A stretch of DNA of 64,000 bases from Chlorokybus atmophyticus (taxonomy: Eukaryota; Plantae; Mesostigma and Chlorokybus algae). Location of the stretch: the NCBI GenBank assembly GCA_009103225.1, contig RHPI01003788.1, forward strand, positions 273,582 to 337,581, written 5' to 3'. Made by a program: the position numbers and the translations under genes. Of this stretch, positions 8,801-36,879 are shown in pieces; positions within the stretch are counted from its first letter, which is position 1, and each line of letters starts with the position of its first letter. Under the pieces are notes generated by a model. The model saw only the letters and a program-made list of their open reading frames with translations. It ran no database searches and had not been told where the DNA came from.

Positions 8801-9961
8801 ATTGTCAAATCTGTGCCAACAGCAAGCCTATGTTATTTGTGACATGTATGTTAACAATTATGTACTACATGTATATGCCATTGGTGTTGGCAAACGTTTG
8901 CCAACACGCACATCCTGTTGTTATGCGTACATCTATTGCTTTTGATGTTTTAAATCTAGCATGGAAGTGTTGTGCTAATCATATATACACATATTTCCCT
9001 TAAACTGCTGTACGACTGCCGGGACTCACAAGTGTGCTGTGCGAAAATGACACCACGCGACGGGTTCGGCAAACTTTGCCAATTACTCGGCGCGCAATAA
9101 GACGCTCCCGCCCACTACGCGCGCATGCTTGTAGAACGCCACTATCCTACTCCCATCAGAGCTACGGATATCCTGCTCCCATCAAAGCTACGGATGGGGT
9201 GGGATTTAAATGCACGGCCTACGACTTGGCCGTGGACCAAACGACTCGACCATTAAGGCACACAATTAAAGTCGCAAATTACTACATTCCATCATGTCAA
9301 CATCCCTGTTCAGCTGTAGCTCTTGTGTGGCCGATTTTCTAACGGCCGTAAACCCCGAGTATTGAAAAGTAGAAGTTGGGCCAAGCGCTATGCGCCGGGG
9401 AGTCTGCCGAGGACTCGGACGGGGTTAAAAAAGTTATTAGTCCATTATATATCAATTGTCTGTTAACTTACTGCTTATGCTGCTAGCTGCTCTCGCCATC
9501 CATTAGCTAGTCGTATGTGGCCTCAAGTTCATGGGCAGGCTGTGGGCTGTCAACAACCTGCTTAATATCAACCGCAGCTCCTTGCTTCGGCAAGGGTAGG
9601 GAACTCTGTTGGCTGTGACTGCGGTGCCTACGATTAGTGTTCCTCTTATTGACTGGTTGCAAGTTGACTCCCTGCTTGGTACCAATGTCCCTGGCAAACT
9701 TAACAGCCTTCTTGCTTGCCATTGGTATCGCGCCAGCATTTTGCCACAAAAGACACCGCTGAGCACACCGCCTCTTGGCGTTGTGCTTAGCGGTGGCGCT
9801 CGGAGGTGGTGCTGGCGAAGGGAGCTGGCGGCGGCGCTTTTGTCGGTGGCGGCGGCGCCGCCACCTACAAGAGCTCACACGGCACTGTTCCACGACGCCA
9901 GTCCAGTTATGGCGCGCAGCGTAGGGCTCATGGGTGGCCCCGTTGACGTACCGGCCCAATA

Positions 9962-10422
9962 TAGTCTACCCCGCCTAAGAGACTTCGTTTCAAGGGAATA
10001 ACCCCGCTAATAGCATAGAATATGAGATTACTAAACGTTTTACAGGCACATGTTGGTGCTTAAGAAAATATGCTTAACCGCGAAGAGCATATTTTTTTGT
10101 TGTGTAATTCTCGCAAGTTTTAGTGAGCGATATTCCAAGGTCGGGGGAGTAGTGCGTGACGGGTGTGGCATAATGCGTAACGCGCGTGATGAATATGGCG
10201 TGATGGTTGAGGTGTGACGCGCAACTAACGTGACGAGCGTGATGGCGCAACGGGCGTGGCATTATACGCTTGACGTAATGGGCGTGATGAAACCGCGCTT
10301 AAAGCATATTTATGCTCTTGACACCCAAGAGCATAATATGCTCTTGGACGTAAAAAGAATTACCCTGCCAAGAGCATAAGATAGCGGAGGATAAACAGTA
10401 TGCTCTTAAAGGGGGTAGACTG
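9962..10422 (+). mobile_element. pogo-type MITE, family A (461 bp)
   Basis: Termini (T)AGTCTACCCC...GGGGTAGACTG with TA on both sides (9960-61, 10423-24), internal AAGAGCAT/ATGCTCTT repeats, non-coding. Same length as, and closely similar to, 36377-36837. Confidence 0.93.
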
Positions 10423-10809
10423 TAATGGGCCGGCAACCAGGGTTTACTGGTCCCGTCGACATCGAGAGCGGTACAGGTGCTGGTCATTGACGGCGCCATC
10501 ACTGGTGCCAACACTTAAGCGCCCCTTGCGGCATTATGGCACCATCATTGTTTCTTCATACACGTCGAGACCGATATTGGTCCGGTCACTAATGGGTGCC
10601 ATATATGGCGCCGAACCTGGTAACGCCGATGTCCGGATGACTGTTCTGGACCGAAGAGGACCAAAATCAAGATGACTGTAACCTCGTTGCATTCTACTAC
10701 TGGTACAGCTGGTACAGGTATATATCAAGTGGCGCCGGCGCTACACCGGTGCTGGGTTGGACATCTGACCGTGAGATCAGGATCAGCCAGTGTGTCTGTC
10801 AGTGCTGTA

Positions 10810-11990
10810 TGGCATACAGTTGACAACTCGACAGCCCCTTAAACATAGCAACATCACTCTGAAGGATAAGAAGCGCATTCATGAGTTGTATCATGAAATG
10901 TGTACCAACTCCACCGTCAAGCAAGCGGACTTCATCGCCAACATGAAGGCAAGTTGAAGTTAGTTATCAAACAGAGTGCCTTGTCCAAGTTGTTGCATAG
11001 TTGTAACAAGATAGTGGACACGTCACCCCAAGGAGGAAACCTTGCTGCACCTACAAAGCGAATGCGTCTTGCCGCTCATCCCAAGTTTGAGGAAGCTATG
11101 TACACATGGTTTACACAAACTCATGCTCGCAATGCCACCATCACGGATCAGATCTTGATAGGGAAGAGTCTAGACTTTGCTAGCAAACTTGGCATAAAAA
11201 CTGTAATGCATCACATGGGTGGGTGCAACGATTTAAGCAACGCCATGCCATACCTGTAAAAGCTCCGCACGGTGCAGCGAATGATGCAGCTGAAGAGGGG
11301 GTGGATATGGCCCGCGCAGGCTTGCCGAAAATTCTTGAGGAGTATGACCCCCGCAACACATTCAACATGGATGAGAGTGGCGTGTTCAATAGAGCCCGCC
11401 CTCGTCGCACACTAGTCACTGCCAGCGAGGAAGCTCGAAGGGGGAAGAGAGAAGGATAAATTCATGGTGGCGCTGTGTGTGAATGCAGACGGGTTTAAGA
11501 AGTTGCCACACTTCCATTCATTGGTACATGAAAAAGAACAAAGTCTTTCGGGAGCACATGAACTCTCATTTACGTTGGCATTGAGTACGAGAACAACAAG
11601 AATGCTTGAATGAATGCGGAGGTAAGGTGTTGTCAACTGCAAGTTTAATTATGTATGTGGCATGCAATGGACATTATATGTTGTGCTGATCTTTTTGCCG
11701 CTGGTTGTGCAACTTCGCCTTTCAGATGAAGCTGCAGAAGTGCAAGGTTCTGCTGCTGCTGGACAACTCCTCGACACACGCCTGCAAGTATGGTGTGGTG
11801 GGCACGGAGAAGGGGTTTAAGACGCTGGAGGTGGACAACGTGAAGTGCCTGTTCCTGCCTCCCAACACGACCAGCATGCTTCAGCCTTTAAACGATAGCA
11901 TTATTGCAGCGTTTAAAGCCAGGTACACATTGCTTTCCTCGCAATTGCTGCATTGCTCTGATAAGCAGCAAGCTAATCAATTATGAAAAC
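10810..11990 (+). pseudogene. Decayed pogo/Tigger-like transposase (CENP-B-type HTH + DDE_1)
   Basis: ITLKDKKRI HTH, HPKFEEAMYTWF, FNMDESGVF, LLDNSSTH, FLPPNTTSMLQPLNDSIIAAFKARY; frameshifts and stops; runs into the N gap at 12033. Confidence 0.9.
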
Positions 11991-12289
11991 TTGTGAGAAA
12001 CTTTGCGCCGCCGCCCCCCCCCCCCCCCCCCCNNNNNNNNNNTCCTGCTGCTTGCAGCCCTAGCAGCGCGCATGGCCGACATGGCCGCCGCCGCCGCCGC
12101 CGCCGCCGCCGGGCCAGTCGGTTACTGTGAGAGGCGACGGGAAGCCGCAGAGTTACGCATCAGTTACGCTGCGTCGCGTAACTGACGCGACGCAGCGTAA
12201 CGCCGCGCATAAATAGTACCCCCCTCGTCTAATAACTCCCCCCCCCTAATACAACACCCCCCCTAAAATATTAGGGGGGGGGCTTTGTT

Positions 12290-12321
12290 TGTAGGGGGGG
12301 GTTGTATTCGCACAAATACGG
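12290..12321 (-). repeat. Terminal inverted repeat-like end of a Tc1/mariner-pogo element (CCGTATTT type)
   Basis: The reverse complement reads TA-CCGTATTTGTGCGAATACAACCCCCCC, resembling CCGTA-type pogo/Tc2 TIRs. The partner end is not visible (assembly gap upstream). Confidence 0.55.
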
Positions 12322-12410
12322 TACGCTCAATCAGTGTAATTTCAATCCAGTACTACGCCCTCTTTCACCCCGAATACAATTACCCCCATAACACACGGAT
12401 TGACGTTCAA

Positions 12411-12937
12411 GGACCATGAATGGTCCGTGACGCAGGACCGGGATTTCCCCCTGCTAAATGAAATCGGTGGACCTTGCATGGTCTGTTTGTCATTGACAGT
12501 CGGACCATTCATGGTCCGAATTTCACGTGAATGGTACCATTGTCCCTTGGTACGCACCACTTAAGGTCCGGCCGATTACTGTTGCGTCAGGACCAGATAT
12601 GGTCCGGCCATCGGACCAGGGACTAAATCATATCATTACAAAACTTCAATTATAACTGGTCCGGCCAGCGGACCATGGACCGAAATTTATTATGGACCAA
12701 TGTCAATATGAGTGCAAATGCAGTAAAAGTTGACACATCTTTGCCGGCGGCACCGGCCACGCCCAACCTGCGGCGCACGAGGCCGCGGCCAGCTCCGCGG
12801 CGTTAGTGGAATGATTAGTCAAGAACACACGCATCGGCCGGATTCGAACCCAGCACCTTTAGCATATCAAAGACGACGCCCTAACCACTAAGCTACAAAC
12901 CACGTGCCGGTAGGGTCGCATGGCAACCTATATCATG
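12411..12937. repeat. GGACC-rich interspersed repeat, copy 1 (adjoins left end of the pogo insertion)
   Basis: About 520 bp colinear with 17068-17585. Similarity resumes briefly (TATGGTGT) after the pogo right end at 16392. Confidence 0.92.
12831..12903 (-). pseudogene. tRNA-derived sequence with intact Pol III A and B boxes (copy 1)
   Basis: Minus strand TAGCTTAGTGG (A box) ... GGTTCGAATCC (B box) at tRNA spacing. Acceptor, anticodon and T stems pair poorly, so not a functional tRNA. Confidence 0.75.
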
Positions 12938-13729
12938 TACAGTCTACCCTCGATATAATATACCCTCACATTAAGAGCATTTACGATATAAGAGCCAAAA
13001 GGCCTTTGCAATTTCGTACATGGGGCAAAACCACCTCCCAATAAGAGTAAGAGCACTCGATATAGGAGCGCTCTGGCCCTGTAGGCAACTCTCTTATTGA
13101 GAGGGATTAGGGTTAGGGTTAGGGGATTTTGCGCAGGGGGCGCAGGAGCAAGCGGCGGCGGAGGAGGAGGGGGGGGAGCAGGGAGGACGACAAAAAGAGG
13201 GCCAGGTGTGCCGTTGTTGTTGTTGTTGTTGTCCTCCTGCTTTGCCTGCTCCTCCGCCGCCGCTTGCCCCTGCATGCCGTCGTAATTGAACAACTTGAAC
13301 AGCTTGCAGGCTGCCGTCATTCAAGTTGTTTACGTTGCTGCTGAGCAGCAACGTGAACAACTTGAACAACTTGCAGGCTGCAAGTTGCTGCAAGTTGCTG
13401 TTGCTGTGATGGGTTGCGTTATAATAGTAGTTGTTGTTGTGTGCTGGGTTGTGTTGTTGCTGTTGGTGTAGTCGTCATTGTTGCTGTCGTTGTTGACACA
13501 CTCTGGCTATGTGCAGGTAATAACATGTGCATGCATGCATGTATGCTGCACGGGGTAAGGGCAGTAGTGAAGGTAGGTAGGTAGCGACTAGGTGAACAGC
13601 CCGGTGGTTGAATATGAGTGTTTGATGGTGTAGTGTGCTGACTGCCTGTGCATGTGTCACACTCTTATGCATGCCGCAATCCTTGCATATTTATTATACA
13701 CACACACACTCTCTCTGTTTTGTCACAGC

Positions 13730-15672
13730 ATGCCGTCCCCAAAGAAGCGCATGCGTCTAACTGATCTTGAAAAGAAGAAAATCTGCCAGCTGAGGGTCAA
13801 CTTTAAGTCCCTTACCCATGACCTCTTTGCGCTTGAAGTGAAGAAGCAGCTCAAGCTGACTGTCAAGCGACAGACATTATCAAAGATATTGCAATGTGAA
13901 GAGGATCTGTTGCAGTTAGATGATAGACAAGCAGCGCGGAAGTCCATTCGCTCTGCAAAATTTGAACAGATTGAGCAGGCTTTGGTGTCATGGTTCAAGA
14001 TTGTAAGTGTACTATTGTTGTTATGCCGTAGATGTGTGTTGTTGCCATGATTCATGCTGAGATTTTGTATGTGCATGACTGCATGTCAGGCCCGAGCTGC
14101 CAACCTGCCATTATCGGACGCGCTGCTACAACAACAAGCGCTCACTTTGGCTCAAGCCAAGGGCGTGCCCCCAGAAGAGTTCAAAGCGTCCAATGGCTGG
14201 CTGGAGAAATTCAAAAAAAGGTGAGTGCCGTAGAAGTGAAAGGTGTCTGTCTTGATTGTGTGCTGACGTGTGTGCGTGCATGTGTGTGTGTACTTGAGTT
14301 GGGCTGGTTGCTGCAGGGAAGGGATCGTGTGCAAAAAGGCACACGGTGAAAGTGCTGATGCTGACATAGTGGGTGTGGAGCTGGCACGGGAGTCTGTACC
14401 GCTTGTGCTGCACGAGTTGGGTGCAACTGTAGAGGACACCTTCAACATTGACGAAGGTGCGTTGTATACAAGGGCCGCACCCGACCGCACCTTGGCGTTT
14501 GCGAGCGAGCAGGTGCGAGGCTTGAAGAAGTCCAAAGAGCGAATCACCGTGTTGTTCGGGTCTAACGCCAACGGCTCCGAACGGCTCAAATTGCTGCTCA
14601 TCAACAAGAGCCTACGACCACATTGCTTTGGCAAAGGGTTTAGTCCTAATGATTTTGTGCATTGGTTCAGTAACAGGAAGGCATGGATGACCATGAAAAT
14701 TTTTGAGGGTTACATGCAAGATATGAATGCGAAGATGGCAATGTCTAATCGCCATATCATTATCCTTCTGGACAATGCTGCCTGTCACAATTTATCAAGT
14801 GAAGGTGCATTGACTTGTATGCTACAATCACATACTGTGCATGTGATTGGTCACTTAAGCATGTCTTGCCTTGCTTGGCAGGTGTCAGGCGGGAGAAGCT
14901 ACACGGGCTTGAGCTGCAACGGATGTCACACATCACCCTTGTGTTCCTACCTCCCAACACCACATCGCAGGTGCAGCCCATGGATCAGGGCATCATCGCC
15001 GCTTTCAAGATGCGGTACAAGAAGCAGCTTGTGTCGTGGCTGCTCGCTGTCCTGGAGTTCAACCCGGGGACTGACCTGAAGGATGTCAAGCCATCCATCA
15101 AGCAAGCGGTGTTGTGGTCATCAGCTGTTTGGGAGGAGATGGACGCATCTATCTTCAAGAACTGCTTTGCTAAAGCTAACTTATGGCCATCAGATTGGTA
15201 TCCCGCCACTCGCAGCGTTGATGAGAGTGTGGCACGAGCTGCCACAGCGATGCAGAAGACCGCAGATGCTGACTGCACAGAGTTGGATGAGCTGATTGGC
15301 AAGTTGGGTATCAATGATGCGCTCTCCGCGGCTGAGTACATCAACATGCCAGGTGAACAGCTTATAGAGGCTGAGTTAACCCCTGACGAGTTGTTGGACA
15401 TGCATGAGCCCGTGACGGCTGATGTGGATGTTGCCCCCAACATGATTGCTGATGGGGACATTGACATTGACGACATCACACCGGAGCCTGTTGCTATTGC
15501 CACTGCAATGGAGTGCGCGGAGAAGTTGGGTGTGTTTACGGCGGATAACTTGGAGGTTTACAGTGCAAGCGACATTGCATGGCTTGAGCGCTTTAAGAAA
15601 AAGGCTATGAGGATGGTAGTGGCAAATGTTACCCGCATGCAGCAGAGTGACATTCGTACCTTTTACGCATAG
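13730..15672 (+). CDS. pogo-family transposase, 4 exons, 560 aa, no disabling lesion seen
   Basis: Exons 13730-14002, 14090-14220, 14317-14804 and 14882-15672 (1683 nt, all GT-AG, phases compatible). Two CENP-B-type HTHs (MPSPKKRMRLTDLEKKKIC; FKASNGWLEKFKKR) and catalytic motifs NIDE, LDNA, QPMDQGII. Confidence 0.93.
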
Positions 15673-16199
15673 ACGCACATGTTGTATACTTGCTTCTTAC
15701 ATGCTGTGCATGTACACATCAAGGCAACTGCAGCTAGGCAAGCATCTACTTGACATGATATGCCTCACTGCAATTGCACCCACACTTACACGCACACACT
15801 CACGCACACGCACACACCCACACTCACACGCACACCTACACACAGTCACACTGACACATAATCCAGCACACGCGTTGGTTGACTGGCCAGCATAAATGAC
15901 GGGGTGGTAGAAGTAGTGGTGCTAGGTGTAGACTTAGGTGGAGGTAATGAAGTAGCCCGGTGTGGATGGTTGAACTAAGCGACGCCGTTGGCTATGCGTG
16001 TCGGATGCATGTTATGCATGTTGTGTGTGTGTGCATGCTGTGCCTGCTGGGTATAAGATACGGATTTATGTGCACTCGCACACACTCACACTCACACATG
16101 AACACAGTTACACGCACGCACATTCCCATACACAAACACGCACATCATCACAGCACACTGACACTCGCATGCACACGCACACACACGCCCACACTGATG

Positions 16200-16389
16200 A
16201 TGCACCGCTGCTACCTCTTTACAAGAGCCATTGCTCCTAATTCGAGGTTACCTCATAATAAGAGCTGTGGCTCTTATTGCAAGGTTCCCTCTCTACAAGA
16301 GCACATGCTCTTATTTCGAGGTAAGAGCACCTCAATATAAGAGCCAAAAGGGCTCGCATAAACGTGGCTCTTATATCGAGGGTAGACTG
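16200..16389. repeat. Subterminal array of TIR-internal motif (CCTC-N5/6-AAGAGC), about 7 copies in both orientations
   Basis: Examples: CCTCTTTACAAGAGC, CCTCATAATAAGAGC, CCTCAATATAAGAGC, GCTCTTATTTCGAGG. A similar array lies at 12945-13100. Likely transposase-binding sites (inference). Confidence 0.8.
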
Positions 16390-16544
16390 TATATGGTGTC
16401 GCGAGGCGTACGGCGAGCTCACCGCCACCACCTTGAAGAACTGCTGGAATAAGAGTGGCGTCACTCCTGCACTCTTGGCACGCGCCCAGCCCTGACGGCG
16501 ACGCATGCGAGCAGGCTGTTATGCAAAAGATTGGCGGCAACATG

Positions 16545-16880
16545 TACACACGGAATTTTTTTCACGGACCAGCCCTGGTCCGCACGTACGGACCAGGGCC
16601 AAAACGCCCGGGCGGCTTGGGGTCCGGACCAGGGTCGGCTGCCTTGGTCTGCACGCGGGGTCCGGACCAGGGCTGGTCCCAACAGTACGTAATTGTCCCA
16701 CGGTCCCCCAAAAAACCGAACCAAGGCTGGTCCCGGTCAGAACTGTTAGAGGTCGGACCGGTTATGGTCATGTGTAAGGACCATCAATGGTCCCTGTTCA
16801 TACAAGCATGCAAAGTAGCAGCCATGGCTGGTGCGCATCTATACCGGTAGATAGTCGAACCAGGTGTGGTCCGGTTGGCA
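16545..16880. repeat. GGACC/GGTCC palindrome cluster
   Basis: Perfect GGACCA-N4-TGGTCC at 16566, 16664 and 16778, plus variants. Confidence 0.85.
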
Positions 16881-17067
16881 GTGTTTACTATGCGTTATGG
16901 CCGGCTGTAGCCGGACCGACTTTATAAGCTGACCGGCAGCGGCTGAAATTGCTGTAATTTAACTGTGCGCTGGCGGCTGACTGCAGTCAGCCGCAGCTGC
17001 AATTGAGCCGCCGCTGACCGCAGTTGGGCCGCCGCTGCTGGTGGCCTGCACACCGCCTGACATTTTT

Positions 17068-17585
17068 GGACCATGAATGGTCCGTACCCTTAGACCGGGA
17101 TTTCCCCCTGCTACATGAAATTGGTGGAGCTTGCATGGTCTGTTTTTAATCGACAGTTGGACCATTGTCACGTGATTGGTACCCTTGTCTCTTGGTACGA
17201 ATCACTCAAGGTCCGGCCGATTACTGTTGCGTCAGGACCAGGTATGGTCCGGCCATCGAACCAGGGATTAATTCATGTCTTTACAATACTTCAATCATAA
17301 CTGGTCCGGCCAGCGGACCATGGACCGAATTTTATGGAACAATGTAAATATGAGTGCAAATGCAGTAAAAGTTGAGACATCTTTGCCGGCGGCACCGGCC
17401 ACGCCCAACCTGCGGCGCACGAGGCCGCGGCCAGCTCCGCGGCGTTAGTGGAATCATTAGTCAAGAACGCACGCATCGGCCGGATTCGAACCCAGTACCT
17501 TTAGCATATCAAAGACGACGCCCTTACCACTAAGCTGCAAGTGCATGTACCTATAGGATCGCATGGCAACCTATATCATATGGTG
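17068..17585. repeat. GGACC-rich interspersed repeat, copy 2
   Basis: Direct-orientation homologue of 12411-12937. Confidence 0.92.
17473..17545 (-). pseudogene. tRNA-derived sequence with A/B boxes (copy 2)
   Basis: CAGCTTAGTGG ... GGTTCGAATCC on the minus strand; same degenerate stems as copy 1. Confidence 0.72.
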
Positions 17586-18409
17586 TTTTGCATGCGCCGC
17601 TTGGCGACTGTCGGCCTGCGGCAGTAATTGCCGATGGACAGTCGGAGATTGTCACTTTGATAGGCCCATAGGCTGAGCCCATGCAACTGTAGCATTCATA
17701 GGCTGTACCACTTACATGGACGGTGGTAAACTACATACCGGTAGCCGCGAACTCGGCGGTTGTCAATACGCCAGTACAATTTGTAGACTTGTTAGGGGCT
17801 GTCATTGTGACAATGCTTAGTGATAGTAGCCAAATTGCGACTGTCAATGCAGCCAGTGTACCTTATCGGGCTGTCGATGATTCTGTGGTCGCATGAGGCT
17901 TTTATAGGCCATTGATGAGGTTATACAAGTAAGGCTATAGGTCATAACATCTGACATTGCTTGCGCTTTCGTTTCATATAAATCATCAAAATTAAATATA
18001 CTATAAACTACGCTTAACAATGCAACATACGAACAGCATCAACATATGTATTCATGGTATGATATTAACGGTTGTGAACATTATAATAATGTCATAACCA
18101 ACGAACTATATATAATGTAATAATTTTACATCCATGCGCTACGCATGGATGTAAAATTGGTATCATTATTAACACTACTATTATTATAGATAATTATAAT
18201 ACTTTTTATATTCATGTTGTTATACATTACTTTAGACGTATACAATTTTGCATATAAAAGGTCAAAATGCACATGTGTACGCGCATCAATATACTTACAA
18301 CAATGTATGTACATGAAATTATAGACATGAAGTAGCTGCACGGCTGCATATTGCGGCCGCAATATGTCGACAATTTTTGCTTGTAAATGCCTTAAGCCTA
18401 CACCTACAT

Positions 18410-18560
18410 GCACACACACACACATATGTGTATATATACATCTGTATATCTGTATATATGCATATATACATATATACATATATATATGTGTATATATACA
18501 CATATATTTATATATACACATATCCATATATACATATGGCCTATATATGTATATATAGGC
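18410..18560. repeat. (TA)/(TATACA)-type compound microsatellite
   Basis: Direct reading. Confidence 0.9.
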
Positions 18561-18827
18561 CACAAGTGGACAGCCGCAACTGGTCGGCGGCTGTCAAGTT
18601 AAAATGTACATGGACAGCCGGCTGTCAATATACATTGACAGCCGACCATTTGCGACTGTCCACTTTATGGTAAGCGGCGACAGTCGGTGCGGCCTGTTAT
18701 ATAAATGATGATACACATTATGTACAATCATACATGTACTAACGATACTGTAGTTATGGTACACGTGTAGCGCGCCCTGCAGGGGCCGCCAACCAGCAAC
18801 ATTGCTGGTCCATGCCGCCCCATACAT

Positions 18828-18954
18828 GGTGCGGCACGAAAATGTACGGTGCGCGGCTCTATGCTGGTTCTTGGATGCGGGCCCGCTCCTGGGTCCGCAT
18901 CCATGAACCAGCATAGAGTACTAATCCGTGCCGCACCATACAAGGTGCGGCACG
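18828..18954. repeat. Fold-back (27-bp inner stem plus 11-bp outer arms)
   Basis: 18858-18884 pairs with 18891-18917 (2 mismatches, 6-nt loop). GGTGCGGCACG at 18828 and 18944 both pair with 18927-18937. Confidence 0.9.
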
Positions 18955-19968
18955 GACCATGTGTGGTGCGCGACTGCGCGCCAGGTATTGGGGCCCCAAA
19001 AGAACCATGGACGGTCCGTCCCTCGCGGACCAGACACTCGTGGTCCGCGGGGACGGACCATGTATGGCCCGCGGGGTCCGTGGAAGGACCATGCATGCAC
19101 GTCAAGCCGTGTGCTGGCGGGCGACCTGGTGCTCCATACCAAGAGCACCAGGCCACGCCGCTGGCCTGGTTATGCTGGCCTGGTGGCGGCCAACATGCTC
19201 AGACCAGCGGCGTCACCAGGCCATAGCTGTGGCTGTCGCTGCAGCCGCCAACTACCAACAGGCCACACACACGTGCATGTCAGCCAGGCCAGCTGTTCAT
19301 GGCCTAGTGCCTCGCAAGCCCACAAGGCTAAGAAACAACGCCCCTCCCTCCCCTCCCCCTCCCCCCGCCCCAAAGCATGCAATGAGCTCACAGCCATGCC
19401 GCATGGCAGTGCCATCCAAGCAGCATACAAATGCAACAACCACAACCAACGGCATGCAGCAAATGGTGCAGCAAATGATAGTAGTAGTTCAACTGTAGAC
19501 TTAGGCTGTTAAGACGTTTACAACAGCTATGATAGCTTCAAGCCATTTGATCCAAGTACTGTCTACACAATCACTCAATGTAGTGGCTACAAGCACGCAG
19601 AAACAAGTTCAAACCTGCTGCTCCAGTATATTGCCCACCGCAGTCTCTCCTCCCCTTGAGTGATGCGACATGTTGGCGCCGCTGCCTGCACATAAGTGCC
19701 ACAGTTGTGGTGCGTTCATGCGTGTGCATGAGTGTGGCTTTGATTGTGTGGGCAATTGTAATTACTACTAAAAGTGATGTGTGGATGCGCATGCGTGTGT
19801 GTGGGTTGCTGTTCTTAGACAGGCAGGACATGAAAAACATGTGCACGTGCATGCACACATGCACACATAAGTAATGCTCACTGAGCTGACTGAGTCTTTG
19901 ACAACGCATGCACGAATGCACGCATGCACGCACACTCATGCGCATGCGCACACACGCACCCATCGTAC

Positions 19969-22613
19969 CTTAAGGTGGTGGATGGCGAGAGAGGTAGTGC
20001 TTACGAACAAAGCCGTGCACACCCTAAACTCTTATTATTTCTTTCCTCAACTGCGGGGGTTGCTGCTTGCCAGCTTGGGAGGCAGTCCGCGCTCCTGCAC
20101 GTGCGCGTGCGCACATATGTGCGCACATGCTTGCTTGCGTGCCAGTGTGCGCGTGTGTGCAAGGAAGAACAACTCACGACTCTGTTGTTCACGCATAGCA
20201 TATGCACTGAACTGTCGCATAGGCCGCCATGATCAGTGCCGCCTATGAGACTCTCATAGGCTGTACAGGCGGGCTCATAGACCGCACTGGCAAGTGCGGC
20301 CCATGAAACAGTGCCGCCTATATAAACTGTCTCGTATGCGGCGCTGGTATGTGAGAGAGAGAGAGAGAGCAAGAGAGAGAGAGAGGCTTACTTGTTGAGG
20401 CGATGAGCGTGCGTGCGTGCGTGGTTGTGCAAGAGCCTGCCTGTGTGTGTCCGCGTGTGCTTGCTTGCGCATGCATGTGCGTGTGGGCATTGGTCAATGC
20501 CATCCTCACTCCCACCCTTTCCAAGCTAAGCAGGCCTACCTGAAAGTTGAGCGGCAAGGTCTTCGCCAGAAATCCCTGTCTGTCATCCTCACCAGCATTG
20601 CCCAGCGGTTGTTGCCAGCCGCAGCGGCTTCTCTGCAAGCATGTAGGGCAAGTTAGTGGTCGCGGTATCATGCTCCTTGGCATGTCGTGGGATGCGCATT
20701 GTCTGCATGAAGGCCTGACAGAGGGGCGGGGGCAGTCTGCAAGCCTGCGCGTGTGCATGTGCGTGTGCACGTTGCACAAGAAGGAAGGAGACGGTGTGGG
20801 TGGGGGGGGGGCAGCTGTTTCAATGCATAGCGTACGTGCCGGACTGGCTCATAGGCCGCACTGGTCAGTGCGGTCTACGAGCCAGCCTACAGAAACTGTC
20901 TCATAGGCACTGAGCAGTGCCTATCATAGGCTGCGCTATTATAGCGTGTAGCCCAACAAATGTGTACACTCACGCACACACAATTGCGCACTCATGCGCC
21001 TGACCCACACACTCATTGCACATACGCACACTCGTGTGCACACACATCGCACCTTAATGATGGCGGAGGGCACGGAGCTGGGGCGAGTAGTGCCTGCTTA
21101 CGCAGAGCTGTGCACAGTGAGAATCTAGTCTTTGCGGTCTATGAGCCAGCGATACCCAATGAGCCAGCCTTATAGCCAACAAGTGTGTGTGCACGTGCAT
21201 ACGTGTGTGACAAAGAGTGCTTGCCTGTCTGGATATTGCGGTCTATGAACTGCATTTTGAGTGTGCGTGCAAATTTACACATGAGCAATGTCACAACACA
21301 CATGCACACACGCACAAGCGCTTGCACACCTTGAAGCTGGAGAGCACGGGCAACTGTATTCAGGTGGTGCTTGTATATGCAGAGCCGCGCAGCCCAAACT
21401 TCTCTCTCTTCTCAGCAGCGGGTGATTGCCAGCTTGGGCGGTCCGCGAACCTGCACGTGTGCGTGCACGTGAGCACATGAATGTGCGCGCGCATGCATGC
21501 ATATATGTGTGTGCGTGTGCGCATGTTCAACAAGCAAGGGGGTGGCGGGGGGGACACCTGCATGCATAGTGTTCGTGTACATGCAGAAGTGCTGCTCATA
21601 GGTCGCACTGTTTAGTGCAGCCTATCAGCCAGCCTACAGCGACTGGCTCACAGGCCGCACCGGATAGTGCGGCCTATGAGCAAGTTGCTTTAAGCCTGTG
21701 AACCCAATATTGACCGTGTGTCTACAAGAATATGTACGCGTGCCATGAAAGCACATCTGTACTTGCACGCGTGCGTAAGTGCATGCCCTTGCACGTGCAT
21801 ATGCGCATGCATATGCACGCACATATTCTTCTCCCCCCCCNNNNNNNNNNNNNNNNNNNNNNNNNNNNNNNNNNNNNNNNNNNNNNNNNNNNNNNNNNNN
21901 NNNNNNNNNNNNNNNNNNNNNNNNNNNNNNNNNNNNNNNNNNNNNNNNNNNNNNNNNNNNNNNNNNNNNNNNNNNNNCCCCCCCCTCTCGTCCTCTTCCC
22001 CTTCCCTCCCCTTATTATTCCGCTCACCTTGAGGTCGCAGGTACCTACTGCAGCGCCCCCTAGTTCTGCGCCCTGAGCAGAGCAGCAACAGTGACGCCCT
22101 GGGTCACATGTGCAGTGACTGTTCTAGACACATGTGCACGGTGGTATGTGCGAGCGGTGATGACGAAGGTGCACCGCACTTGTCTGCAAGCGCACGCACT
22201 GTGTGACACACATACACATACGCGCAAAGATATGCGCACGCACGCGCACTCTTGCAAGCATGTGGGTGTACCCCATGCACACGTACACACGTTCTCACCC
22301 TCACGGCACTTCAGAGCATGCATTGCGCAATGCATGCATAGCTGCCAGCTCAGCATCTACGGAGCAGCGGCTGCTTGATGGCGCCATCCACGCCTCCTCC
22401 GTCGGGCACCTTCCGGTTGGCAGCACTTGACTGGCCTGCACGAGCAAGTGAGCTTGCCATAGCAACCATGCGAAGTGCCTTTTTCTGAAACTGTTGCACA
22501 ATGCTGTGCAGTCTGTGGGCGTCTATGGGCTTCTGGACAGCCGCTCCATGGGTTTTAGAATCCACTGACCAGGCATCGCTGGCTCATAGGCACTGGTTAG
22601 TGCAGTCTATGAG
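19969..22613. repeat. Array of diverged exon-like units interleaved with CA-rich tracts and CTCATAGGCCGCACT-N4-AGTGCGGCCTATGAG palindromes
   Basis: Palindromes at 20218, 20274, 20848, 20900, 21595, 21647 and 22583. Related AG/GT-bounded minus-strand segments at 19969-20094, ~20538-20633 and 21330-21450. Confidence 0.75.
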
Positions 22614-24049: not shown

Positions 24050-24564
24050 CCAAGGCTGGTCCTAGTGATGAGGACATTTTGTATAGCGTTAGGCTTTTTG
24101 AGCCTGCGGTTGAGGATGAGGCTGCTGAGGCTGATGGTGAGGACATGTAATGCATTGTGCACAAACATGCATGCGTGCATTTCTGTGACTGAAAGTTCAC
24201 ACAGAGGTGTTGTAGATGGATGCGAGGAGGTTGTGCCGCCGCGCGTAACGGTGGCGTTGTGCATGACGTTCTTCCATGGTGTGGAGGCGTTCATCGCTAC
24301 CAACGACTACCCCATTTCAGAACATTATTAGCTCACATTGCGTCAGCTGCGTAGTGTGGTCATCAAGCATCAGATATATAATGCCGGGCATAAAACTCGC
24401 ATCCAGGACTTTTTCACAGCGGGTGATACCGGGCATAAGGCTATAAGAGCTTAATTATGCTGTTGACGGTTAAAGAATACATATTTTCTTAAACACTAAG
24501 AATACCCCCATGACTGGAATGAAAAAGGTAGGGATAAACGTGATTCTTATCACGAGGAAGACTG
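24050..24564 (+). mobile_element. 3' remnant of a pogo-like element (transposase C-terminus and right TIR)
   Basis: PSDEDIL...PPRVTVALC...KTRIQDFF matches pogo C-termini. The end at 24564 reads (reverse complement) CAGTCTTCCTCGTGATAAGAATCACG followed by TA, similar to the left end of the 35240 MITE. Confidence 0.8.
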
Positions 24565-27741: not shown

Positions 27742-27745
<4 letters not shown>

Positions 27746-28464
27746 AAACGTAAATAATAAATATATGTACAAAGTAAATACAAACACCGTTGGATCGATG
27801 CGGCGTTGACCGCTCGATGCTTCGATACATATTTCTTTCATTTATTGCCGATCTTCGCCGTGCTCCGCCGTGCGTTACAATACACAAGAAACACCTTTAC
27901 GTACCGTGTGTACCGTACAAACAGTACACCTTTGCGTACCGTACTCTAAGCTGCCCCCCCCCCCCCCATCCCCCCCGTTTTGTACTGTGCATCTAATTGA
28001 TTACACAGAGCGCCACATAGATGCCTCTAAAGCAAATGTATATATTTAGAGCACTGTGTAGCTATTTAGATACATACATTTATCAGAGCAAACAAAGTTG
28101 CGGTAAGTAAGGTTAGAGTTTTCATTGGTCGGCAGCCGTTGGGGGCGGCGGCATGGGCGGCTTGGGGGCGGCGTGGGTGGGCTACATATGTGACAATGAT
28201 GGCCACCATAGACATGTAGCTAGTATGTATAAGCCTGTTGTTGACAATGTTAATGGCATACATGAGCTTGTTTCATTGCGATAGGGTCTTTTTGTGGCTG
28301 TTTACAAGCGCCACATGTTTGGGAGCTGATGTTACCCCCTTGAAGCTAATCCATCCACCACCTCCCTCTCCTCATGCTCCCCCCCCGCCCCCACCGCCCC
28401 CACCTCCCCCTCAACCTCCATCATCACAACCCCAATCGCGACAAGAGGGTAAGTCACAAACACA

Positions 28465-29160
28465 CATGGTGTGTGTGTGGGTGTGTATGCGCGTGTATAT
28501 GTGCGCTCGTTACATGTTTGTGAGCGTGCGTGCGTGCACGCATGCGTATGCTCGTGCTCGTCTGCGTGCGGACGCATATGTGCGCATGTGTACCTTGCGA
28601 CAATGTGTGCGCGCATGCAAGCTGGTGTCGGGACAGGAGTGTATGCTCGTGTGCGCGCGTGTACGTGTATGCATACGTGCATCCGCATACACGCGTGCGT
28701 GTGTATGCGTGCATGCGCGTGTGTATGCTCATGTGCGCATATGCATACACGCGTTTACGTGTATGCATCTATGCATCTGCATACACGCGCGTGTGTGTAT
28801 GTGTATGGGCGTGTGTGGGTATGAATGCGCGTCGTATATGTGTGTGCGCTCATCACATGCGTGCGTACGTGCGTGAGCGCGCGTGTATATGCTTGTGGTC
28901 GCTATGTGCGCATGTGTTGTGTGGACGCTATGCGCTTATGTGTATGCGGCAATGTGTGTACGCATGCAAGCTAGTGTCGGGGCGGGCGTGGAGGCATGTG
29001 AGTTTGCATGTAGACATATGCATATGCACGTATGCATGCCCGCATGTGTATGTGTATGGGCATGTGTGGGCGCCAAGGCTATTGTGCGCGTGCACGCATG
29101 CGTGTACGTGTGTGTGAATGTGTATATCATGTATAGGATGATGCCTGTGTGGCGTGTGTG
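28465..29160. repeat. Degenerate (GT/GC/AT) purine-pyrimidine alternating tract
   Basis: Direct reading; it produces spurious C/V/R/A/H-rich ORFs. Confidence 0.9.
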
Positions 29161-29199
29161 TGATATGTATTGTACAAACTCATGTGCTGACATTGATAT

Positions 29200-31587
29200 G
29201 TGAACAGACAATGAGGAAATTGGAGCGGGGCACCCCGTATATGAAGAAGCTTCTAAGCGAGTGCGCTTGTATGCACCAGAACTAGTTTGCAACAATGTCA
29301 GCCAAACGTGGCAGCTCAAGTAACCATTGCAACTTATGCACTGGCCCGATATACGAATGCCAATGACAAACCCTTTGTTGGCTGTCAAGACAAAAGAGGC
29401 CTGCACGCCATCAACCTTCGACAAGAAAGACTGTTATGTAGATGATGTTAACACCATTATGGTGTAATCTTGTTGGCATGGGTGTATGCCCGTATGCATG
29501 CGTGCGTGGGGTTAAGCATCTACTAGGTGGCACGCGTGTGGATGTAGAATGTCATGCGATGAGGGCTGCTTGATGTTCAAGTGCATATGCAGGTGACATA
29601 CTGGGTGCCTCGTGTTTTTTTCAATTAATATGTGAAGCAATACTCCCGCATGTAACAAGAAGGCCATCACATCTGATGGGTGGTATAAACACATGCGCAA
29701 GGTCACAGGGCTACGTGGTAGTAACTGGCTCTATGGCATGAGTCTGAGCTGCAAAAAGTGTACAGGTACGCATTGTCACACATGCATTGCGTATACACAC
29801 ACATTGCTAGCACATATGTAAATGCTTGCATGTTGATTCAACATGCAAGCATTTACATATGTGCAAATGGTATTGCAGGTAATGAAAGTAGAGACTTTAC
29901 TTGTCTCATATACAATTATACAATTATCGAATCCTTGGGCGGCTGCCAACATTTGTGCGAGACGAGTTCAAGATTCTGTTGACACCACGAGTAGGGTTAA
30001 GAAAAGACTTATTCGATTTTATTACGAGAGCCATAGTATGTGGTCAATCACTCCACGATGTATGCGAGCAACTCAAAGAGAGTCATCGCACCGACTACAC
30101 ACGGGTACATTGTTCTAATCTGGTATTGTATGCTCTTCGGCACAGTGATTGCATGCTTGAGCACTCAAATTAACCATAATTACGTCTTTTCTTAGTAAAT
30201 GCAGACGCTATTAGTGTACACTGAAATTTGGGAGTACCTGCACAAACCCGGTGATGCATTATCTTATCTTTGTACTACATCCATGCCGTCGCCGCCTGCG
30301 TTTGAAGTCTTTGATGATCCCAAGGGATGGCGCGGGTACGTGCCAAGCGCTGAGTACCTGACTCAGCAATACATTAAGCATGGTCAAGCAAGACGTGAAT
30401 GGCAACAAAAGAGGATGACGACACTTGGTGGAGCTATACTAGCTGTGGATCATACATACTTTAAATTGCCCAAATTTGTGCGACAAGAAGGACGTAAGGT
30501 GGCGGAAGATGTTTTCACACTTTATAACGAAACCAAGCAAGTGTGGTTGCATTGATTTGCGACTGCTGTGATTAAGTTTGATAGATTGTGCGGTCAGTTG
30601 GGTGAACACAATCACCCACACACGAACTGTCTATGGGTGATTGGATGGTACCTGGCTAGCTCATCCAGATTGGCCAAAGTCGTCCCAGCCTTGCCAATGA
30701 TTATTAAGCGTGCATACTACGCTGTGCATCAACAAGTGAGACGCACGTGCACGCCGCAGTGTTTGCTATAAAGCAATGAGTGTGCTTGCATATGCATGAA
30801 CAAAACTGTGTGCAGTCATTGAAGGTGGTGTGTTGTGATAACTCGACAAGCATGGAGATGTTCTTACTCCAAGGTTTCGGGTTGGACCATCTTTTGGTTT
30901 TGAAAGATCCATGGCATTTTAGAAATATTTTAGAAACAGCATTACAGAAACAGCACACAACCCCTCACCTCCTGACCACGTTGGTGCCACCCTATTAGAA
31001 CACGCTCTCTCACAGCAGACCAGCAACACAACTTAAGTAAGTAGTAGCTGCATGTTAATGCAATCATAACGTGGTGTTCAATGTGGACATGACCGACAAC
31101 CGTTGTAGGCACAAGCCACACCGGCAACGGATTATAACCCCTCTCGTTCAAGCAGCTTCAACGCCACAGCAAACCAACCACAACATGTGTCTTCTCAGCA
31201 TGACAGCAACACCACAAGTTAAGTAAGTGGTGTGCGTGCGAACGTGCAAGTTTGTGCGAGCGCTCGCGCGATCGAGGGCGCGTGCGTGCGTGCGTGCGAA
31301 TGAGTGCGTGCGTTTGTGCAAACGTGCATCGGTGAGTGCGTGCGAGTGGGTGAGCGTGCATGCGTTGATTTGTGCGTGCATACGTGCGAACGTGCGAGCG
31401 AGCGTGCGAGCGAGTGCGCGTACGTGCGTGCGTGCATGCGTGCGAACGTACGAGCGTGCATGCTAGCGAGCGTGCAAGCGAGCACGCGAGCGAGGGCGCG
31501 TAGGTGCGTGCGTGTGCGAATGAGTGTGCGTGCATGCGTGCGACCGGATGTCGGTGCAAGCATGCGTGTGTGCAAGCGAGCGAGGGC

Positions 31588-31618
<31 letters not shown>

Positions 31619-33006
31619 AGTGAGTGTGCGTGCATGCGTGCGTGCAAAAGTGCGTCGGTGCGAGCGAGCAAGCGTGCGTGCGTGCGCGCGTGCGTGCGTG
31701 CGTGCGTGCTTCGGTGAGTGCGTGCGAGCGGGTGAGCGTGCGTGCAGTGGTTCGTGCGTGCGAGCGAACGAACGTGCGAGCGTGTGTATGAGCATGCATG
31801 TGGAGCATGAATGCGAGGTTGCACGCGTGCGTGTGCGCCAGCGTGCGGGTTAGCGTGCGCGTGTGCATGAGCGTGAGTGTGCGCGTGTGCGTGCATGCTT
31901 GCGCATATGTGTGCCAATTTTATACGTTGTCATTTACAGATTGAGGAGGTCATCGATGATGAGTTGTACAATTACTTCACCCTTTTTTAGCAGGAGCGGG
32001 TCGCGACACAGCAAGTAAGTACCGCAATGCAAGTCAATTGGCAAAGGTTTAAGTGTGGTAATGTTAATCGTGATGCAGGGTGTCAGGCAAGCACACAACT
32101 CATCACACGATGCTGATCTCCTTGCCGAAGGCACGCGAAGAATGAGCATAACACCACGTCCTCCAAGGCCAGCGTGGCGACTGAGCCCACGCATTCCAAC
32201 TCAATCCGTCAGCAACGTCAATGCACGCAATGAAGGTGTGGCAAGTTTCTAAACTAGGGTTCTCATTTGCGGTCATACGAAACTCCGCAGACGCACATGC
32301 GGCGTGCATGTACGTGCTTGTTGTATGCGCATACATAGCCACAAATGCTCCATGCACGTGAATATAAACATGTCGTTCACAATGAATTTGCTTAGGCACT
32401 CAACCTGGAGCATCGAAGAATGCAGCGCATGGAGCACAACGCAATTTGAAGGTGCGCTCGGGTGTGTTGCACAAAAAGAAACCCATCAATTTTGCACGAC
32501 ACATTGCAAACGCCGAAGAACGACGGATGTGGTTTAAACTACACCAAGCGTCCACAAACAACACTGGCAAAACCGATTGGGACGCTATGTGTAGGGAGTG
32601 GAATTAGGGTTAAGTGAACAGGTAGCTCAAAAGAATGGCCGCGAGATCTATTGAAAGTGCAAGCATTATCTGCAAGCGTTTGAACGCCAGCTAGTCAAAG
32701 ACTTGGTGGAAAACGAGCATGTAACCATGCGCAATGCTATGCAGGGTTTTTTTGCAGACACTACCAGCGTCACTCCTCTGAGTGCAACAGCACATTGCAA
32801 ACCAACCCAAAGCCGAGCCTCCTCAAGCTCAGCGCCAATCAACCCGCCGCCAGCTACAGTCACGTGTCATGCGTAAGGACTTCGCGCATTGGCGGGAGTG
32901 CCCCTTTAAGGATGTCACCAAGTTCCCGTGGCCTCCACTGTTGAGCGACATCTGTGGGCCAGACTGCAAAACGAATTGCCGAGTAGCAGGAGATTTGCGA
33001 GTGTAG
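29200..33006 (+). pseudogene. Intron-split, decayed DDE-like transposase gene (DUF6729-like N-terminus)
   Basis: Segments translate to TYWVPRVFF...PACNKKAITSDGWYKHMRKVTGL...WLYGMSLSCKKC; RILGRLPTFVRDEFKILLTPRVGL...LKESH; FDDPKGWRGYVPSAEYL...GAILAVDHTYFKLPK (30448)...FTLYNETKQV; VVCCDN...LKDPWH (30906); GKTDWDAMCREWN...EIY*KCKHYL. Several stops and frameshifts. The family assignment is from memory of motifs, not a search. Confidence 0.65.
31240..31910. repeat. (GCGT)n/(GCGA)n microsatellite inside a presumed intron
   Basis: Direct reading; flanked by GTAAGT at ~31223 and TTACAG at ~31938. Confidence 0.92.
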
Positions 33007-33045
33007 AGTCTCATCAGCGCTAGAGATTCAGATTCATCTTGCTTC

Positions 33046-33079
<34 letters not shown>

Positions 33080-33137
33080 CCTCCCCTATAATGCACTTAA
33101 AATGAATATGAATGCACAGCTTTTCGCACAGATGCAT

Positions 33138-33582
<445 letters not shown>

Positions 33583-34351
33583 CTATACCCTTGTCCACTT
33601 GCACCAACGACAGGATTTCAAGCCCAAGTGTAAGTCCACGCGCTGTACCGTTTGCTAGTTTCGCCTAAATGCACGCCGCCGCCGCCCACGCCGCCGCCGC
33701 TGCCAAGAACGGGCGCCAAGTTGCAACTACTGACAACTTACCACACTTGCATTTAGAGGTTACTTAGGTTTCGTAATTGATATCATACTGTATGATTCAT
33801 ACAGCCAAATGTATGCCGAAAAAGTACGGTACCTACTGCACAGTGCCTGAGGTACCGTATTAACGCATAACGGCAGTCAGCGAATGCGGTAAATACTATG
33901 ATGAAACTGGACATCGGCAGCCCAAAGAGCACTGGAAGCATGCGAGGATGTTGTGAAAAACTTGTTGAATTTTGTAAAAAAAGTGGGCCCGACGCTGTAT
34001 TTACTTGAAATTAGGCCCGAAATATTAAATACAAACGCTTAAGGACAATGGTCTGATCCGCCGGGCCCCCTCGCGGTCCGTCGGAAAATTGCCTTGTGGC
34101 TCCTCCGCCAGCGCCACCTCACTAAGTGGTAAAACCTTCTGCACAGACCACGGTATGATGAGCCCATGCATGTAAGCTGACAGTTGCACCATACACGGTG
34201 TTCAACTCTGTGGATCAATTGCCCACCGTTCGCGTTGCTTAGATCAACGGTTACAAAAGGCTAAGCCTTCTAGTCTAGCCTCTGCACAAAACCATCTTAA
34301 GGAAACTACATAAGTCAATTTAGCATGTATTCTAGCATCTAGACATAGGGT

Positions 34352-34720
34352 GAGGTCGCCGATGAGGCCCTCACTTATCTCCTGCATGCTTGTTGCGCAG
34401 GCTGTGGATTGATGGGATTTATCGTGTGAACCTGTCACTGCATCGCCTCCACGAGCAGCCATGAAGGGTGCAATTGGTGTGTTCATCGGCACCTCACTCA
34501 ATAGCTGGGCACGTCGACTTTTGCTTAGCCGATGCGCGGTCGCCGGTGTGGCCCTCACTTGTCTCCTTCATGGTTGTTGCGCAGGCTGTGGATTAATGGG
34601 ATTTATCGCGTGACCCCGTCATTGCATCGCCTCCACGCGCAGCCATAAAGGGTGCAATTGGTGTGTTCATAGGCACCTCACTCAATAGCTTGGCACATTC
34701 CCTTTTGCTTAGCCGATGCG
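34352..34720. repeat. ~184-bp tandem duplication
   Basis: GTTGCGCAGGCTGTGGATT at 34392 and 34576; the units align over their whole length. Confidence 0.92.
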
Positions 34721-34734
34721 CCAGCAGTGATCCA

Positions 34735-34836
34735 CTTCACTCATTATTATTGGCTCACGCACGTGAGCATTAACAATCGCACCGTGCATGGGACTGTCAA
34801 TGCTCACGTGCGTAAGCCAACAATAATGGAGTGAAG
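34735..34836. repeat. 41-bp-arm hairpin (19-nt loop)
   Basis: 34735-34775 pairs with 34795-34836 with 3 transitions and one 1-nt bulge. Confidence 0.92.
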
Positions 34837-35239
34837 CGTGCGTCAATGATGGTCCGCCCAATTACTTTACAACGGACAAAAACAGGACCATATATGGTTC
34901 AGCACTCATATGGAGGACCGACCATGAATGGTCCGTACTCTCTCAGACCATCGGACCAAGAAGTGCTTGGTTACGTTAAGGACCATGTATGATCCGAAAT
35001 CGTATGAAAACATGAACAAAAGCTTATTATAGCGGCAGACCATGTATGGTGCGTACTGGCCTATAAGTTGGGCGTGCACCAGCGATGGTCGGCCCAATGG
35101 TTCTGGTTTCGACCAGCCACATGGATATTATTCAACAAAACATATATGGTTCGGCATTGTTGTTGTCCAAACCACGCATTGACGTACACCCATTGACAGT
35201 CGGACCGGCAATATCCCTGCTCCCGCTGCGGCCCATGTA

Positions 35240-35716
35240 CAGTCTACCCCCATGAAGAATCACGTTTAACTTTCACCTTTGCATTCCACGAACGGGGTTA
35301 TTCTCTTGGCACTTATAAAAATATATATTCTTTTACCGTAAACTGGATATATATGCCACTAACAGAGGTGTTGCCTGATAACCTTAAGCTACGTAATTAT
35401 ATGTTGACGTGGCACAAAAGTAATCGACAAATATTAATTACCATTTATGTCACATACGACATCATATATGAATTTTGTGACATGTTAATTTTAATAATTA
35501 AAAAATAAGCATGCTTAACAAGGTATCCCTCGGTATAAGACTGAGCCCACTTGAAATTTTAAGCCTTCGCTTTAGTCTTATTACGTACAAGACAGTAGTC
35601 TTGTACTCCACTAACTGATGATGTTTGCCTGTAAAACCATTAGTCTTTTGCAATTCTATGATCTTAATGGGGTTATTCTCTTAAACCGAAGTCTTGTAAT
35701 GGTCGGGGGTAGACTG
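35240..35716. mobile_element. pogo-type MITE, family B (477 bp)
   Basis: TA-CAGTCTACCCCC...GGGGGTAGACTG-TA; AT-rich interior different from family A but sharing the GGGGTTATTCTCTT motif. Confidence 0.9.
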
Positions 35717-35792
35717 TATGGTCTGAACTTTCGCCAATAGGACCAGTGCATTGTCTGGTCCGGCAGGTCTGGTGCGCGACTGCGCAATGGTA

Positions 35793-36266
35793 CAGTCTAC
35801 CCCCTTTAAGAGCATACCGTTTATCCTCCGCTATCTCACGCTCTTGGCGGGGTAATTCTCTTAACGTCCAAGAGCATACTATGCTCTTGGGTGTCAAGAG
35901 CCTAAATATGCTTTAAGCGCGGTTTCATCACGCCCATCACGCCCATTGCGCCATGCGTATCACGCCACGCCTGTCGCGCCATCACGCTCGTCACGCTAAC
36001 TGTGCGTCACACCTCAACTATCACGCCCTATTCATCACGCGCGCGCGTTACGCGTTATGCCACACCCGTCACGCATTACTCCCCCGACTTTGCAATATCG
36101 CTCATTAAAACTTGCAAAAATTGCATGAAATAAAAATATGCTCTTCGCGGTTAAGCACATTCTCTTAGGAACCAACATTTGCCTGTATTCCGTTTGATAA
36201 TCTCATTTTCTATGCTGTTAGCGGGGTTATTCTCTTGGAGCGAAGTCTCTAAGCGGGGGTAGACTG
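35793..36266 (-). mobile_element. pogo-type MITE, family A, inverted copy (474 bp)
   Basis: TIRs CAGTCTACCCCC with TA both sides; reverse complement of family A with a small internal insertion. Confidence 0.93.
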
Positions 36267-36376
36267 TATTTGGAGCCTCGAACGAACCAACAACGGACGG
36301 TCTTCCGCGGATTAGGCAGTTTCGGCCCGCGGCGTACGCACCATGCATGGTACGCGGGGTACGCGAAAGGACCATA

Positions 36377-36837
36377 CAGTCTACCCCCGCTAAGAGACTT
36401 CGTTGCAAGGGAATAACCCCGCTAATAGCACAGAATATGAAATTACCAAACGTTTTACAGGCAAATGTTGGTGCCCAAGAGAATATGCTTAACCGCAAAG
36501 AGCATATTCTTATGACATGTAATTCTTGCAAGTTTTAGTGAGCAATATTTCAAGGTTGGGGGAGTAGTGCGTGACGGGTGTGGCATAACGCGTGACGCGC
36601 GTGATGAATATGGCGTGATGGTTGAGGTGTGACGCGCAACTAACGTGACGAGCGTGATGGCGCGACGGGCGTGGCATTATACGCTTGACACAACGGGCGT
36701 GATGAAACCACGCTTAAAGCATATTTATGCTCTTGACACCCAAGAGCATAATATGCTCTAGAACGTCAAGAGAATTACCCCGCCAAGAGCATAAGATAGC
36801 GGAGGATAAACAGTATGCTCTTAAAGGGGGTAGACTG
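36377..36837 (+). mobile_element. pogo-type MITE, family A (461 bp)
   Basis: TIRs CAGTCTACCCCC with TA both sides; colinear with 9962-10422. Confidence 0.95.
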
Positions 36838-36879
36838 TACCTGGTCTTGGAACGTCAAGCCGTGTGCCAGATTATAAGG

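Follow-up and report, generated by a model that had tools for sequence, protein, structure and literature searches.

Pogo-type elements at the ends of a resident CACAC-ended transposon in Chlorokybus atmophyticus: suggestive evidence for targeted insertion into its subterminal dyads

We analysed a 64-kb stretch of the Chlorokybus atmophyticus genome (assembly GCA_009103225.1, contig RHPI01003788.1, positions 273,582 to 337,581, forward strand; hereafter the window, numbered from its first letter). The stretch holds a group of pogo-type DNA transposons inserted in and around the ends of a second, resident family of DNA transposons. An earlier note on this DNA had proposed that the pogo elements enter the spacer of a short palindrome abundant in the resident repeats, GGNCCA-N4-TGGNCC, which we call the dyad. 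All counts and P values given below refer to this single 64-kb window, which holds three insertions into dyads. The association of the pogo elements with resident ends is strong; targeted insertion is suggestive and unproven.

[quoted passage not shown] A search with the terminal sequence CAGTCTACCC returned paired matches that bound five of them; the sixth, the older copy, has a degenerate right end. Reading of the junctions revealed a TA duplication on both sides of all six elements. Empty sites were reconstructed by deleting each element plus one TA from the sequence. The elements and their empty sites are as follows:

9962–10422, plus strand: MITE, 461 bp; TA at 9960–9961 and 10423–10424; splits the dyad CCGGCCCA (9951–9958) / TGGGCCGG (10426–10433); empty site CCGGCCCA-ATAA-TGGGCCGG, a dyad with perfect 8-bp arms.
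12940–16389, plus strand: full-length pogo copy of 3450 bp that carries a DDE_1 transposase and is flanked by TA duplications; outside the dyads, 547 bp inside resident copy A; non-dyad empty site ATCATG-TA-TATGG.
35240–35716, no strand assigned: MITE of a second family, 477 bp, with an AT-rich interior; splits GGCCCA (35230–35235) / TGGTCT (35719–35724); empty site GGCCCA-TGTA-TGGTCT, a dyad with arms complementary at 4/6 positions.
35793–36266, minus strand: MITE, 474 bp, in the orientation opposite to that of the 9962 copy; non-dyad empty site CAATGG-TA-TTTGG.
36377–36837, plus strand: MITE, 461 bp; splits GGACCA (36369–36374) / TGGTCT (36842–36847), the first dyad of the resident end at 36866; empty site GGACCA-TACC-TGGTCT, a dyad with arms complementary at 5/6 positions.
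36909–37690, plus strand: older related element, 782 bp, with a degenerate right end and an internal duplication of ~334 bp; non-dyad empty site ACGAC-TA-CAGGT.

The three palindromic empty sites of the earlier note, each with a TA in its 4-nt spacer, were thus recovered from matches of the terminal inverted repeats (TIRs), from the TA duplications and from the reconstructed sites. Reading the 35240 site in another register, with TG duplicated and ends of TACAG, fails on the other copies, and the TA register was kept. The tandem duplication of the older element (36874–37252) comprises the left end of the element and ~30 bp of the left flank.

Identity between the 9962 and 36377 MITEs is 93%; the inverted 35793 MITE is 86% identical to them. 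The 35240 MITE belongs to a second family that has only the terminal 12 bases and ~90 bp of one end in common with the others. A solo end of this second family (24456–24564; ~130 bp, 74% identity) stops at GAAGACTG-TA, with a dyad cluster ~500 bp away; its partner end was not found and, with only ~130 bp of homology, no empty site could be rebuilt. The MITEs are non-coding, and their terminal CAGTCTACCC is identical to that of the 3450-bp coding copy; beyond the termini, their likeness to that copy is limited to AAGAGC-type motifs. We infer that they are mobilised by the transposase of the 3450-bp copy. The family would then comprise one apparently coding copy and at least two MITE families with its terminal bases.

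The DDE_1 transposase of the 3450-bp copy occupies at least two reading frames (~13742–14884 and 14842–15669), so its gene is presumably spliced. Its exons were searched separately, as unjoined open reading frames (ORFs): two of them match PF03184 (E=2.5e-17 and 5.5e-14) and jointly cover profile positions 1–177. Homologous transposases of 541–664 aa align over 13742–15669. As to an N-terminal CENP-B/Tc5-type helix-turn-helix DNA-binding domain, the ORF at 13652–14050 gave no Pfam match at E≤0.01, although the homologues align from their residues 12–61 onward. Relatives reached at most 43% identity in a protein word search with the largest exon and at best 37% in an all-protein representative search; a metagenome scan with the 18-base TIR pattern gave 0 matches.

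We detected the resident repeats by comparing the window, minus its pogo elements, with itself and by motif searches. Five resident ends start with CACAC(G/C)G, at 12392(+), 16547(+), 17049(+), 19113(−) and 36866(−). A TTGAC(G/A)T-like sequence comes next in 4 of the 5, and the dyads hold fixed positions near the ends, the first at ~20 bp. The resident features are:

9876–10660, plus strand: diverged resident element, its end tentative; CACACGG followed by motifs of the TTGACG and CCA-N4-TGG types, with the 9962 MITE 84 bp in.
12392–12939, plus strand: resident repeat copy A; its end begins CACACGGATTGACGT and its dyads lie at 12411, 12502 and 12590.
16547–16880, plus strand: resident end; CACACGG, a first dyad GGACCA-GCCC-TGGTCC, and the densest dyad cluster of the window.
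17049–19113, no strand assigned: resident non-autonomous DNA transposon, 2065 bp; CACAC(C/G)G termini, a CTG/CTG 3-bp duplication, and dyads near both ends.
34850–36866, minus strand: subterminal region of a resident transposon; its end at 36866 reads CACACGGCTTGACGT, then the first dyad; three nested pogo MITEs.

The palindrome that the earlier note had described as abundant in the resident repeats is therefore a subterminal motif of a resident DNA-transposon family. Termini that start with CAC and carry terminal inverted repeats are those expected of a CACTA/CMC-like element, and we tentatively place the family there because of these CAC termini, the 3-bp duplication and the dense subterminal arrays. 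We hold this assignment loosely because a single duplication pair underlies it and the window yielded no transposase. The CTG/CTG pair of 17049/19113 would match by chance once in 64, and no partner ends for the remaining resident termini were found in the window. A search of 27 ORFs between 24.6 and 40 kb gave no usable Pfam match to a CMC-type transposase. The sole Pfam match on ORFs between 24.6 and 33.1 kb was to DUF6729 (29901–30173, plus strand; E=2.9e-4, below cut-off), in a multi-intron gene region. An autonomous resident copy may lie elsewhere in the genome.

Several further features accompany the resident repeats. The TTGACGT motif (TGACG core) just outside the first dyad of resident ends occurs at 9943, 12400, 19099(−), 35179 and 36852(−), and may be a second, putative protein-binding site. 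The element at 17049–19113 holds a TA-rich palindromic microsatellite (18424–18560) and a long GC-rich palindrome (18560–18670). The ~550-bp repeat of copies A and B (copy B, 17049–17586, is 87% identical to copy A) includes a degenerate tRNA-like segment at 12829–12902 (minus strand) and a matching part of 17480–17560. In copy A this segment scored 21.5 bits against the Rfam tRNA model, below the cut-off of 29, with box A and box B visible by eye; ARAGORN called no tRNA.

Arms of the form G.CCA/TGG.C occur 13 times at a spacing of four bases and 0–5 times at each other spacing from 0 to 12, and this peak marks the dyad as a genuine local feature. Dyads cluster at 12.4–12.7, 16.5–17.3, 18.8–19.1, 23.8–24.1 and 34.85–36.4 kb. 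The TA occupies spacer positions 2–3 in one occupied site and the spacer edge in the other two; the edge placement, NNTA-TGG, is also typical of empty dyads. The register thus seems to follow the position of the TA within the spacer and not a base-specific reading of a symmetric site. A paralogue near 18980 carries CCA-N5-TGG at the position that matches the 35793 site.

Where do the pogo elements lie relative to the resident ends? Once the pogo elements are taken out of the coordinates, the end at 36866 has three MITEs inside it: that of 36377 at 28 bp, in the first dyad, that of 35793 at 136 bp and that of 35240 at 210 bp. The 36909 element lies outside the same end, 41 bp away. The tentative end at 9876 has the 9962 MITE 84 bp inside it, and copy A has the full-length 12940 copy 547 bp inside. 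The earlier note was thus right that the 12940 and 35793 sites, although off the motif, are in or near resident repeats. After element removal the window contains 2786 TA sites. Only 52 of them lie ≤250 bp inside one of six ends, yet four of the six insertions are there (P=1.8e-6); a wider zone, from 600 bp inside a resident end to 50 bp outside it, takes in all six (P=1.3e-7), with the zones chosen post hoc and four insertions forming one cluster.

The dyads are enriched on top of this. Spacers of CCA-N4-TGG contain 14 of the 2786 TA sites and three of the six insertions (hypergeometric P=2e-6). Measured against the TA sites within 50–400 bp of each insertion, P was 0.006–0.015 for the core motif and 0.001–0.01 for the G.CCA/TGG.C arms; measured against TA sites inside the resident end zones, it was 0.003–0.006. 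The earlier note had named the lack of enrichment beyond local TA availability as grounds for giving up its proposal; in the window the enrichment persists both locally (P=0.001–0.015) and in the end zones. A Monte Carlo look-elsewhere correction that allowed any 3-base palindromic arms and spacers of 2–6 gave P=4e-4 against all TA sites and 0.006 against zone TA sites. Half of the TA-bearing strict dyads in the window (3/6) are occupied. The converse search, for inserts with any inverted repeats that interrupt a dyad at TA, recovered only these three MITEs.

These figures also bear on the simplest alternative, a regional bias alone: pogo elements would gather in or beside resident ends, because the DNA there is open or tolerates insertion, because they hop locally, or because they home to MITE copies inserted earlier, and the dyad matches would be chance. 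All six insertions are near resident ends, four of them within ~260 bp of original sequence, and dyad spacers already supply 6–13 of the 52–198 zone TA sites, so that the conditional P is only 0.001–0.015. Nesting of MITEs in particular repeat families is moreover documented in plants (PMC5172404). Still, the conditional P stays at ~0.006 after the look-elsewhere correction, and the 9962 event lies 25 kb from the cluster, in the best palindrome of the window. We consider regional bias alone rather unlikely as the full explanation.

A preference for TA flanked by CA/TG steps has been reported for Tc1 and Sleeping Beauty. The pogo transposase might likewise have an intrinsic preference, for sequence or deformability, for such sites, which TA-bearing dyads supply in number. 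The 35240 and 12940 sites would suit this, as both read CATG-TA-T and lie in alternating pyrimidine-purine runs of at least 8 bases; the remaining four sites, however, have short runs of 3–5. The generic CA-N4-TG context offers 95 TA positions, and all three insertions fall in the 6 with full G.CCA/TGG.C arms (P=1.4e-4), which makes an intrinsic CA/TG preference an improbable sole cause.

The earlier note would also have been undone had the flanks been co-duplicated with the MITE, that is, had one ancestral MITE-in-dyad insertion been copied with its surroundings. The 9962 and 36377 MITEs, 93% identical, do each stand beside a TTGACGT module. The flanks, however, are alike only in 8–9 base chance words and, beyond these, only where neighbouring flanks physically overlap. 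The two copies lie in homologous TTGACGT-plus-dyad modules, but in opposite orientations to the module and at different spacer positions (ATAA versus GGTA), and are thus separate events. The third dyad event involves a different MITE family. For these three copies the unrelated flanks, orientations and spacers refute co-duplication, and we give an artefact of this kind next to no credence. Uninterrupted paralogues exist for three sites: copy B for the 12940 site, and 18958–19114 (72% identity) for the 35793 and 36377 sites.

The empty site of the full-length element, ATCATGTATATGG (12925–12950 / 16385–16400), is 4 bases longer than the copy B site, ATCATATGG (17565–17586); this excess could be an indel between the 87%-identical copies or an old footprint. 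The assembly gaps (12033–12042 and 21841–21977) and the single Ns at 33277 and 55781 fall outside every element, flank and paralogue used, and the finding needs no continuity across a gap; only larger-scale distances are affected. A long poly-C run (12000–12033) abuts the first gap, with C-run/G-run inverted tracts just downstream (12230–12300), and the gap at 12033 probably reflects a sequencing problem at the homopolymer.

Could the transposase read DNA structure and not sequence? It might recognise an extruded stem-loop and cut in the loop, as some bacterial insertion sequences do in repetitive extragenic palindromic (REP) units. At the 9962 site the stem is a perfect 8 bp and the loop 4 bases (−11.4 kcal/mol as a single-strand fold), and insertion sequences that target REP palindromes exist (PMC1525189). 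On the contrary, the other two occupied sites fold at −3.8 and −0.7 kcal/mol while empty TA-bearing dyads fold better (−6.0 to −8.8 kcal/mol), and stems of 3–5 bp would not be expected to extrude from duplex DNA. Occupancy is thus not predicted by hairpin strength, which disfavours the cruciform idea; we regard it as very improbable. The proposal of the earlier note that one transposon targets another therefore fared unevenly: it gains support because a CACAC-ended DNA transposon carries the dyads as its subterminal motif, and its hairpin or cruciform version is disfavoured by the fold energies.

Taken together, these results lead us to think it somewhat probable that the pogo family prefers the subterminal regions of resident CACAC-ended, CACTA/CMC-like elements and, within them, TA in the 4-bp spacers of GGNCCA-N4-TGGNCC. 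Several points count against this preference for dyads. The insertions into dyads number only three, all from one window, and two of these fall within one 210-bp stretch; two dyad and two non-dyad insertions share ~260 bp of original sequence and are possibly not independent in place. The dyad motif and the end zones were chosen post hoc, after the data had been seen. Three of the six insertions are outside dyads, two of the three occupied dyads have imperfect arms, and near-identical dyads were left empty (17238, GGACCA-GGTA-TGGTCC; 19058; 12593). No dyad-binding protein was identified in the window. Finally, 895 new insertions of Drosophila pogo revealed no target motif beyond TA (PMC3276498).

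How might a preference for dyads arise? Integration complexes of the Tc1/mariner type need a bent TA step, as structural work on mariner has established. A dimeric protein from the resident transposon, or a host factor, could bind the dyads, or the dyads could be intrinsically deformable; the bound or deformable spacer would then supply a sharply bent TA step for the Tc1/mariner-type transpososome. Any TA present in the spacer would be used, and its position would set the register. The most specific form of this scheme has the pogo transposase guided to, or strongly favoured by, a complex of the rival transposon's own DNA-binding protein on its terminal dyads; we find that form unlikely.

The subterminal repeats of CACTA/En-Spm (CMC) elements are bound by an element-encoded protein. 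The resident element resembles this group in its CAC-starting termini, in dense subterminal motif arrays with inverted pairs among them and, judged from a single CTG/CTG pair, in a candidate 3-bp duplication, and differs in that no CMC transposase was identified in the window, the call resting on one duplication pair and the termini. The pogo family itself is like pogo/Tigger elements and their MITEs, for example Lemi1 and Emigrant: TA duplication, short TIRs, a DDE_1 transposase, and MITEs with common termini and subterminal motifs (here of the AAGAGC type). Lemi1 proteins bind both the TIRs and subterminal motifs of Emigrant (PMC1636448). Unlike Drosophila pogo, without a motif beyond TA, half of the insertions here are in one dyad of another transposon.

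Among known cases of target choice, insertion sequences that target REP palindromes appear to be the nearest functional analogue: IS1397 and members of the IS110 family target REP/palindromic units (PMC1525189), and there too a mobile element enters the centre of a short, abundant palindromic repeat. Those elements, however, are prokaryotic, belong to other transposase families and use structured hairpin targets, whereas here hairpin strength does not track occupancy. Maize and rice MITEs nest in other repeat families above expectation and by independent events (Jiang and Wessler 2001, via PMC5172404). That nesting is described at the level of families; here it apparently extends down to a defined 16-bp dyad and to the host element's first few hundred bases. 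Palindromic target motifs are known for P, hobo and Transib elements (PMC3276498), and nested long terminal repeat (LTR) retrotransposons have a weak palindrome preference (PMC6911290). The dyads are like these in that symmetric target features reflect multimeric integration complexes; the P/hobo/Transib and LTR motifs, however, have the duplication at their centre and keep a fixed register, while the position of the TA in the dyad spacer varies.

Two other features of the window may be recorded. An uninterrupted 752-aa ORF with HisKA and HATPase_c domains (a histidine kinase; 40442–42700, plus strand) lies in its most GC-rich part (62%), and a copia-type gag-integrase ORF (Retrotran_gag_2 and rve; 59728–62070, minus strand) lies between 95%-identical repeats at 57707–58222 and 62176–62692.

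Near-random integration at TA has its textbook example in the Tc1/mariner-pogo elements. A pogo family concentrated in a dyad of another transposon would show that target choice can evolve without a dedicated targeting domain. If the preference is real, transposons within a genome would compete through loss of a rival's terminal binding sites, and a natural way of directing vectors of the pogo or mariner type would suggest itself. Should the pogo transposase moreover be guided by the complex of the rival's protein on its dyads, the rival's transposase-binding sites would be used as landing pads and disabled in the process, as in the first dyad of the end at 36866, and the system would be a eukaryotic cut-and-paste counterpart of the REP-targeting insertion sequences. 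With its insertions concentrated in the terminal dyads of another transposon, a eukaryotic pogo family would be a new form of a known phenomenon, target-site selection.

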